Shown here: piece by piece, positions 1,519 through 42,904 of the stretch
How positions within the stretch are numbered: position 1 is the first letter of the stretch
Layout of the letters: each line of letters begins with the position of its first letter
DNA from: Octopus bimaculoides
Taxonomy: Eukaryota
Reading direction: 5' to 3'
DNA length: 44,516 nt
NCBI RefSeq assembly: GCF_001194135.2
Contig: NC_068981.1
Location: forward strand, 152,149,103 to 152,193,618
The notes under the pieces: generated by a model
What the model was told of the DNA's origin: nothing
What the model saw: the letters and a program-made list of their open reading frames with translations, nothing else
The model's database searches: none
Made by a program: the position numbers and the translations under genes

Positions 1519-1548
1519 CAACAGTAGATTCAACATCAGACGGTTTTT
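1519..1548 (-). CDS. micro-exon class A: [10 protein letters not shown]
   Basis: 30 nt, tttAG|AAAAACCGTCTGATGTTGAATCTACTGTTG|GTGAGT. Confidence 0.9.

Positions 1549-42904: not shown

Follow-up and report, generated by a model that had tools for sequence, protein, structure and literature searches.

The 44,516-nt stretch of Octopus bimaculoides DNA analyzed here (contig NC_068981.1, forward strand; hereafter, the window) is an interior segment of a single large gene on the minus strand, and the coding sequence of this gene found in it consists of at least 44 tandem micro-exons of 30 or 24 nt distributed over positions 1519-42904. Splicing of 19 of these micro-exons at the predicted borders was observed in transcripts, and the reading frame and splice sites of the array have been kept by selection, whereas the introns have diverged beyond alignment. 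The array probably represents the internal part of a giant gene encoding a disordered spring or spacer whose length can be tuned by splicing.

Micro-exon array, its splicing and its conservation

The plus-strand pattern CTYAC-N30-CT was matched 49 times over both strands, with 46 of the matches on the plus strand, whereas 100 dinucleotide-preserving shuffles gave 5.04 ± 2.28 expected matches and a maximum of 10. The same flanks with a spacer of N24, N27, N33 or N36 had 5, 9, 0 and 1 matches, respectively. Read on the minus strand, the true matches present a polypyrimidine tract, AG, 30 nt and then GTRAG, and are stop-free at frame offset 2. The curated catalogue comprises 44 minus-strand micro-exons (42 of 30 nt and two of 24 nt) with a total length of 1308 nt, which corresponds to 435 codons and to 3.2% of 1519-42904; the 43 introns between them range from 251 to 5244 nt (median 547) and are all in phase 1. 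These values agree with the preliminary description of this DNA, which had proposed minus-strand AG-exon-GT cassettes, about 43 exons, about 426 amino acids and about 3% of the sequence. Most entries of its exon list were retained, but five 30-nt matches and one 24-nt match proved false, and one exon (32996-33025, donor GTAATG), overlooked by the original motif, was added by a looser scan. The false 30-nt matches arose by chance or fall in repeats: 19472 is located inside a reverse transcriptase open reading frame (ORF) of a long interspersed nuclear element (LINE) and 18595 just beside it, and those at 22132, 26743 and 35975 were likewise judged false; the 24-nt match at 29718 falls in the very-high-copy dispersed repeat 29620-29925. 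The proposal that the spacing is longer where exons have died is in line with the two dead copies given at the end of the list below.

Conspecific RNA-seq data were mapped on five microsatellite-free stretches, as raw reads of runs X24, X26 and X27 and as RNA contigs of X13 and X15. Fifteen exact junctions involving 19 exons were found, with CT..AC ends on the plus strand, i.e., GT..AG on the minus strand, at the predicted borders. They comprised 13520/1-13909/10, 13939-14283, 14312-14755, 14784-15532 and 15561-15866 in block C; 6891-7280, 7309-7857 and 7886-8218 in block B; 42196-42525, 42548-42875, 30679-31435, 31464-31878, 37134-39872 and 39901-41051 elsewhere; and the junction of 42167 to 41051, supported by loose ends from either side. 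The exons are listed below in the 5' to 3' order of the gene and are cited by their first plus-strand position; those called predicted were identified by splice sites, an open frame and paralogy.

42875-42904, minus strand: 30-nt micro-exon HLTEPEYWI (type-2 block); joint 42548/42875 with CT..AC ends in an X13 RNA contig; a loose RNA end upstream is a K-type exon not in the window
42525-42548, minus strand: 24-nt micro-exon RPRAETI; joints 42196/42525 and 42548/42875
42167-42196, minus strand: 30-nt micro-exon TISETIVRG; joint 42196/42525, loose ends to 41051 across a gap (X13, X15)
41051-41080, minus strand: 30-nt micro-exon KPSDVESTY; joint 39901/41051 (X13 depth 65, X15 depth 74)
39872-39901, minus strand: 30-nt micro-exon KLFAVKSTV (diverged T-type); joints 37134/39872 and 39901/41051
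37105-37134, minus strand: 30-nt micro-exon KLSAVESTV (diverged T-type); joint 37134/39872 in X13
35905-35934, minus strand: predicted 30-nt micro-exon QPSEVETTV (Q-type); AG/GTAAGT, paralog of confirmed exons
35558-35587, minus strand: predicted 30-nt micro-exon IIKETGSRI (R-type)
35277-35306, minus strand: predicted 30-nt micro-exon KTSEIESTV (K-type)
32996-33025, minus strand: predicted 30-nt micro-exon IVTEKVTRT (V-type), donor GTAATG; aligns with exon 15866 and its flanks
32449-32478, minus strand: predicted 30-nt micro-exon TRSEVESSV (T-type); very low RNA depth, no exact junction listed
31878-31907, minus strand: 30-nt micro-exon IVTQDERPI (I-type); joint 31464/31878 in X13
31435-31464, minus strand: 30-nt micro-exon QPSEAETTV (Q-type); joints 30679/31435 and 31464/31878 in X13
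30650-30679, minus strand: 30-nt micro-exon IVTETESRI (R-type); joint 30679/31435, some reads from paralogs outside the window
30263-30292, minus strand: putative 30-nt micro-exon KPSEVETTV (K-type); consensus sites, RNA depth about 0 in X24, X26, X13 and X15
27700-27729, minus strand: predicted 30-nt micro-exon VVTEKVTRT (V-type)
27351-27380, minus strand: predicted 30-nt micro-exon THPEVETSV (T-type)
25451-25480, minus strand: predicted 30-nt micro-exon PLTEPEYWI (type-2 block, second copy); paralog of RNA-confirmed 42875
24634-24657, minus strand: predicted 24-nt micro-exon RPHAETI; paralog of confirmed 42525
24308-24337, minus strand: predicted 30-nt micro-exon IIKETIIRG; paralog of confirmed 42167
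23369-23398, minus strand: predicted 30-nt micro-exon KPSEVESTF; paralog of confirmed 41051
21493-21522, minus strand: doubtful or decaying predicted 30-nt micro-exon IATKIKSLI; AG and GTAAGC, the only exon ending in C, acidic pattern gone
21188-21217, minus strand: predicted 30-nt micro-exon TPSEVESAV (K-type)
18161-18190, minus strand: predicted 30-nt micro-exon VVTEEVTHT (V-type)
17452-17481, minus strand: predicted 30-nt micro-exon KPSEVESTV (K-type)
15866-15895, minus strand: 30-nt micro-exon VVTEKVTRT (block C); joint 15561/15866 in raw reads of X24, X26 and X27 and in X13 contigs
15532-15561, minus strand: 30-nt micro-exon TRSEVESTV (block C); joints 14784/15532 and 15561/15866
14755-14784, minus strand: 30-nt micro-exon IVTQEERPR (block C); joints 14312/14755 and 14784/15532
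14283-14312, minus strand: 30-nt micro-exon EPSEVEATV (block C); joints 13939/14283 and 14312/14755
13910-13939, minus strand: 30-nt micro-exon IIKETESRI (block C); joints 13520-1/13909-10 and 13939/14283
13492-13521, minus strand: 30-nt micro-exon KPSEVESTV (block C); joint to exon 13910
8218-8247, minus strand: 30-nt micro-exon FVTEKVTRT (block B); joint 7886/8218
7857-7886, minus strand: 30-nt micro-exon TRSEVESTV (block B); joints 7309/7857 and 7886/8218
7280-7309, minus strand: 30-nt micro-exon VVQQDERPK (block B); joints 6891/7280 and 7309/7857
6862-6891, minus strand: 30-nt micro-exon QPSEAEATV (block B); joint 6891/7280, sequence identical to exon 6166
6166-6195, minus strand: predicted 30-nt micro-exon QPSEAEATV, identical twin of 6862; reads fit both twins
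5415-5444, minus strand: predicted 30-nt micro-exon IIRETESRI (block B)
5049-5078, minus strand: predicted 30-nt micro-exon KPSSVESTV (block B)
4056-4085, minus strand: predicted 30-nt micro-exon VVTEKVTRT (block A)
3708-3737, minus strand: predicted 30-nt micro-exon TRSEVESTV (block A)
2941-2970, minus strand: predicted 30-nt micro-exon IVTQDERPK (block A)
2351-2380, minus strand: predicted 30-nt micro-exon QPSEAEATV (block A)
1976-2005, minus strand: predicted 30-nt micro-exon IIRETESRI (block A); its sequence equals RNA variant 13930 T>C
1519-1548, minus strand: predicted 30-nt micro-exon KPSDVESTV (block A)
11271-11300, minus strand: dead copy of a T-type exon found by mismatch search; AC in place of the acceptor AG, differs from exon 15532 at 4 positions, flanks alignable with 15493-15610
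5787-5816, minus strand: dead copy of an R-type exon found by mismatch search; both splice sites lost, 9 mismatches to exon 1976

Raw-read RNA depth was concentrated on the exons, apart from patches resembling dispersed repeats in some introns, and in X13 and X15 the introns were covered at a depth of 5-12 without mismatches, a pattern in keeping with pre-mRNA from a long gene. The set of included exons varies from sample to sample. Exons 42875, 42525, 42167, 41051, 39872 and 37105 were chained in X13 and X15 (contig depths 10-74), whereas the same six exons had zero reads in X24 and X26, except for a depth of 0.93 in the 42875 bin of X24; in X27, mapped here on 41975-43960 only, zero reads were found on exons 42875, 42525 and 42167. 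Block C received 10-35 reads in X24, X26 and X27, and the block B stretch received 55-65 mapped reads in X24 and X26, mostly from a dispersed repeat (6479-6654). The RNA variant 13930 T>C on exon 13910 suggests that exon 1976 or an identical paralog is expressed. The preliminary description had stated beforehand that it would be refuted if the segments were not joined at the predicted AG/GT borders in any transcript, and with 15 exact junctions its claim stands; its suggestion that the protein is splice-tunable is likewise borne out by exons 42875-37105, which are spliced in X13 and X15 and have almost no reads in X24 and X26, although these runs cover other blocks. A joint of 13939 to 15532, which would skip two exons, was not counted as alternative splicing, since its reads bear variants specific to paralogs and may derive from copies that lie beyond the window. 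It should also be noted that a 703-nt RNA contig of X13 (depth 54) contained three spliced exons and part of a fourth and then ran past the exon 13492 donor, with 470 nt or more of intron sequence; possible causes of this read-through are a retained intron, an alternative 3' end, and a de Bruijn assembly that fused mRNA with pre-mRNA.

Coding selection was assessed on four complete six-exon blocks, each concatenated: A (1519-4085), B (5049-8247), C (13492-15895) and D (30263-33025). Pairwise differences between the blocks at codon positions 1, 2 and 3 were in the ratio 26:25:102, and the Nei-Gojobori ratio of nonsynonymous to synonymous substitution rates (dN/dS) was 0.08-0.29 (dS 0.37-0.61), with values of 0.08-0.13 for block A against the other blocks; the phase 1-1, stop-free coding frame proposed earlier is thus supported. 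Ungapped identity within an exon type was about 0.8 in the exon and the adjoining 10 nt, 0.59 at a distance of 11-20 nt, and at a baseline of about 0.33 beyond 30 nt, so that the conserved zone comprises the exons plus about 20 nt on either side. AG and GT were present in 44/44 exons, GTRAG in 43/44, A at +4 in 44/44 and G at +5 in 43/44. The final exon base was G in 43/44 exons and the first two bases were AA or AT in 40/44, which gives GAA (Glu) or GAT (Asp) as the split codon and, consequently, phase 1 introns and exons of class 1-1. An independent, single-copy DNA contig from a conspecific sample (X1, depth 56) spans 13020-15544 with one mismatch, and contigs orthologous to block C were present in two related species (coded B and C) with roughly 93-96% identity. 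The first minus-strand base of exon 13492 (position 13521) is G, so that the split codon specifies Gly; in the related species and in most paralogs it is A and specifies Glu, and the Glu-to-Gly change is lineage- or copy-specific.

Repeat hierarchy, copy number and protein product

The decamers encoded by the exons correspond to the consensus E-[IKT]-[PV]-[ST]-E-V-E-[ST]-[TR]-[VI]. Two decamer classes, one with a hydrophobic start and the other containing Pro or Arg (e.g., KPSxVESTV), alternate to form a 20-residue unit; six exons form a 60-residue super-repeat spanning 3.5-4 kb, and the super-repeats are nested in a higher-order unit of about 17.5 kb, which also carries a four-exon EPEYWIDRP block. 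This block is present twice, about 17.5 kb apart, with units that include (R/H)AETI (24 nt), (T/I)I(S/K)ETI(V/I)RG and KPS(D/E)VEST(Y/F), and its introns are still alignable (24286-26160 vs. 42145-43914, 71-78% identical). The nested repeat levels, together with the still-alignable introns of the block, indicate that the array expanded through tandem duplications that are nested in one another and differ in age.

When the X1 DNA depth was summed over the exons of each type and divided by the single-copy value of 56, the ratio was about 31 for the T-type, 24 for R, 17 for K, 9.5 for Q, 8 for I and 4.5 for V. Over 7183-8062, the DNA contigs of X1, which is another individual, represented a variant diverged by about 5%, with a depth of 590-1900 compared with 52 for single-copy sequence; about 11 or more near-identical young copies of 7281-8052 are present elsewhere or have been collapsed in the assembly. 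An RNA contig of this 7183-8062 variant, with the intron included, had a depth of 79. RNA loose ends at several exons lead to neighbouring repeat exons that are absent from the window, and a K-type exon, also absent from it, was placed by RNA upstream of 8218; this exon may belong to a paralog elsewhere or lie in an assembly gap. Taken together, the DNA depth and the RNA loose ends suggest that the total number of exons in the gene is several-fold that of the window, possibly over a hundred.

The 435-residue conceptual product is composed of E (23%), T (15%), V (14%), S (10%), I (8%), R (6%), P (5.5%), K (5%), A (3.7%) and G (0.9%), among other residues, with E, T, V and S together making up 62%; P+E+V+K accounts for 47.8% (51.5% with A) and P+E+V+T for 57%. 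Its isoelectric point is 4.37, its net charge is -0.145 per residue, and its Uversky mean hydropathy of 0.418, against a boundary of 0.465, predicts a natively unfolded chain. The product is thus predicted to be a strongly acidic, intrinsically disordered polyelectrolyte. The S/T-x-x-E spacing is recurrent in it and, speculatively, might fit sites of acidophilic kinases. The search of protein databases with the concatenated exons, which had been proposed in the preliminary description, gave no match among 5.8 billion proteins. The collection searched includes cephalopod proteins, as evidenced by the Argonauta hians and Octopus sinensis matches of the LINE ORF, and the missing match is consistent with the array being unannotated there, a possibility that had also been raised earlier. 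In searches of the literature on cephalopod titin and PEVK and on octopus microexons, no account of this gene was found, nor did any paper have the peptide strings of the product.

Functional interpretation and rival explanations

Arrays of short symmetric exons that encode elastic or disordered repeats are already known from titin PEVK and elastin; a run of 44 or more uniform 30-nt exons encoding an acidic E/T/V/S decamer with no database counterpart is apparently an extreme and undescribed variant of this kind. The titin PEVK region is built of numerous short, repetitive exons that undergo alternative splicing and are missed by standard predictors; it expands by tandem, LINE-associated duplication and has about 113 annotated exons in humans, and the PEVK_Finder cut-off for vertebrate PEVK exons is 0.54 (PMC6469411). 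The octopus array shares with it tandem, short, symmetric and repetitive exons used as alternative cassettes (44 exons of phase 1-1, 15 junctions and sample-specific inclusion), a charged, disordered, Glu- and Val-rich product, the duplication of multi-exon blocks, a LINE fragment in an intron, and the fact of being missed by standard predictors. Unlike PEVK, its exons are 30 nt long and encode 10 residues, T and S stand in place of P and K, and no similarity is detectable. The PPAK units of titin have 26-28 residues and exons of roughly 75-84 nt.

Invertebrate I-band titin springs include the 'PEVT' repeats of Caenorhabditis elegans TTN-1 and crayfish I-connectin, and the Glu/Val/Thr-rich elastic repeats of these giant muscle proteins resemble the product described here. 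In Drosophila Sallimus, spring exons are included by muscle type, and most of the spring is encoded by a small number of large exons, 31 and 32 (bioRxiv 10.1101/2024.09.30.615857). The octopus array differs from Sallimus in having dozens of micro-exons, no detected homology and no immunoglobulin domains within the window. In elastin, all exons are cassettes with the same codon split (one base at the 3' end and two at the next 5' end), and elastomer domains alternate by exon. The uniform phase 1-1 split is found here as well, whereas the hydrophobic G/V/P/A domains and Lys cross-linking domains of vertebrate extracellular elastin are not, the product having 23% E, 0.9% G and 3.7% A and being devoid of Gly-rich motifs. 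Neural microexons dependent on SRRM4/eMIC are similar in size class (up to 30 nt) and frame-preserving length; they are, however, isolated exons in ordinary genes with a UGC enhancer near the acceptor, whereas the array is homogeneous, and TGC within -40..-1 of the acceptor was found in 15/44 exons against a background of 39%, i.e., without enrichment. GAA was present in 39/44 exons, and the exons were 59% purine.

The product would act as an extensible spring or spacer within a very large protein, and the number of symmetric cassettes spliced in would set its length, and hence its compliance, in 10-residue steps, as in titin PEVK. Because of this functional likeness, the foremost candidate host gene is an I-band titin homolog of the sallimus/connectin type. 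A length of 30 nt is close to the limit of what the spliceosome can define as an exon unaided, and recognition of the micro-exons would probably rely on their short introns, on donors that are nearly perfect matches to G|GTRAGT, on strong pyrimidine tracts and on purine cores rich in GAA. A bolder reading, in which the array belongs to an unannotated, cephalopod-specific giant disordered protein non-homologous to PEVK, with well over 100 uniform 30-nt exons recognized constitutively and independently of SRRM4 and with length set combinatorially tissue by tissue, is a tentative possibility when all its parts are taken jointly. To our knowledge, well over 100 uniform 30-nt exons would make it the longest homogeneous micro-exon array described.

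A number of observations weigh against the spring or spacer interpretation. The mechanical role is pure inference, and the window contains repeat exons only, with no exons of flanking domains. No similarity to PEVK, PPAK or poly-E motifs was detected: the product had no match among the 5.8 billion proteins at E ≤ 0.001 or E ≤ 10, no match among PDB sequences at E ≤ 10, and no significant match in Pfam (best Intimin_C, E = 0.026, 15.4 bits against a cut-off of 27), with the low-complexity score corrections of such searches possibly masking weak similarity. The PEVK content of 47.8% (51.5% with A) is borderline and lies below 0.54, T and S having replaced P and K, and the repeat unit is a decamer rather than a 26-28-mer; like the lack of detectable similarity, both points speak against simple membership in titin. 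Direct RNA junctions cover only 19/44 exons; in the four runs examined (X24, X26, X13 and X15), exon 30263 was nearly without RNA cover, and exon 32449 had very little RNA and no exact junction. Reads from paralogs outside the window cross-map and partly confound the evidence on isoforms. Expression was modest, with a few reads per exon (6% of each of three deep RNA runs was read), which would be unlike titin if the runs came from muscle.

Some of the same features would also suit an acidic repeat protein that is secreted or otherwise extracellular (for instance, a matrix or adhesive protein, a mucin-like protein or a phosphoprotein that binds calcium), in which the S/T-x-x-E pattern would serve phosphorylation and ion binding. 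Phase 1-1 exons are typical of extracellular modular proteins and elastin, the product is very acidic, S/T-rich and recurrent in S/T-x-x-E, it has no likeness to a known intracellular family, and it is modestly expressed in deep RNA runs. However, neither a signal peptide nor a terminal exon is visible in the window, Cys is absent, Gly and Pro are scarce, and there are no long S/T/P runs of the mucin type; moreover, the gene appears to be very large, and the low intron cover in two RNA runs is as expected for a very long, slowly processed transcript. We therefore regard a secreted protein as unlikely, although it deserves consideration. A gene of the schistosome micro-exon gene (MEG) type, i.e., a small secreted protein varied by micro-exon skipping, for example for antigenic or functional variation, is considerably harder to reconcile with the data. 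MEGs are few-exon, small, secreted, non-repetitive genes known only from flatworms. The array is like them in that all coding sequence seen consists of symmetric exons of ≤36 nt, whose inclusion varies among samples, skipping giving variants; it is unlike them in that its exons are tandem paralogs of one decamer, with at least 44 in the window and several-fold more in the genome, its product has at least 435 and probably more than 1000 residues, and its lineage is cephalopod rather than platyhelminth. A MEG-type gene is, therefore, very improbable.

It could also be argued that the segments have no function at all, being a transcribed tandem repeat, transposon-derived pseudo-exons spliced as noise, or an assembly artefact, since dead or silent copies exist, the DNA of parts of the region is present in multiple copies, and the scaffold is interrupted by five gaps. 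This is scarcely credible in view of the dN/dS values of 0.08-0.29 with a fourfold excess of third-position changes, the 44/44 splice-site pairs kept while the introns are at baseline identity, the exact junctions in several runs, and the independent DNA contigs from the same and related species that confirm block C. A transposon or satellite origin in particular was rejected in view of the codon-position pattern and the exact splicing.

With at least 44 consecutive spliced 30-nt exons, and a full run that may exceed 100 according to DNA depth, the array is a natural test bed for micro-exon recognition and an example of protein length adjustable in 10-residue steps, as well as of a selected and expressed coding region missed by ORF-based and standard gene-model pipelines. 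If the host gene is a cephalopod titin homolog, the array would explain at the molecular level how obliquely striated muscle tunes its passive elasticity; otherwise, it would belong to a new protein of the elastomer-like or spacer kind.

Assembly gaps, dispersed repeats and an intronic retrotransposon

The window contains five assembly gaps, each adjoining a microsatellite or a very-high-copy repeat:

41543-41951, no strand: gap inside an intron, flanked by (TG)n and (TA)n; X13 and X15 contigs splice 42167 directly to 41051
28939-29619, no strand: gap with (AT)n on the left and the very-high-copy repeat 29620-29925 on the right; the neighbouring exon 30263 is without RNA reads
12893-12902, no strand: gap beside (AT)n in the 5.2-kb exon-free interval
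11981-12054, no strand: gap with a (TA)n right flank in the same 5.2-kb exon-free interval, which also holds a dead exon
6596-6695, no strand: gap with the repeat 6479-6595 as left flank; the right side, 6696-7094, is scarcely covered by X1 DNA contigs

Splicing across 41543-41951, the only gap shown to be bridged in this way, demonstrates that both its sides belong to one transcript and that no exon inside it was used in those molecules. Since all exons are symmetric, the gaps cannot break the reading frame, and hidden cassettes or a mis-join would affect only the number or order of exons. Independent contigs of both DNA and RNA extend from 13520 as far as the (AT)n near 12900 and end there. 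The twin exons 6166 and 6862 flank the gap 6596-6695, and the joint 6195/6862 is not listed among the RNA junctions of the block B stretch. The two sides of this gap share just 71 nt (94%), which argues against a plain haplotype duplicate of the gap flanks; the twins represent either a real local duplication or an assembly duplicate.

The repeat 6479-6595, with an X1 DNA word depth of about 1.4e5, probably caused the gap 6596-6695. The repeat 29620-29925, with an RNA depth of about 1000x in raw reads and about 1e5 in contigs, is unrelated to the two other repeats and probably caused the gap 28939-29619. A segment of about 100 nt in 43315-43448 had an RNA depth of about 200x in raw reads and a contig depth of more than 14000, and its reads continue into many unrelated sequences; it is a dispersed repeat, similar to a short interspersed nuclear element, present in many transcripts. 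Neither this segment nor the window as a whole gave a match in scans for Rfam families and tRNAs. The window is rich in microsatellites, namely (TG)n, (AT)n, (AG)n and (TAA)n, with 113 Tandem Repeats Finder (TRF) rows in 44.5 kb, and four of the five gaps adjoin one. The intron between exons 21188 and 18161 contains a minus-strand ORF of 385 amino acids (18930-20087) encoding the reverse transcriptase of a non-long-terminal-repeat retrotransposon, the LINE mentioned above; its best named matches, in Argonauta hians and Octopus sinensis (53-55% identity), agree with the cephalopod source suspected in the preliminary description and hint at an octopod host, and its relatives carry PF00078.

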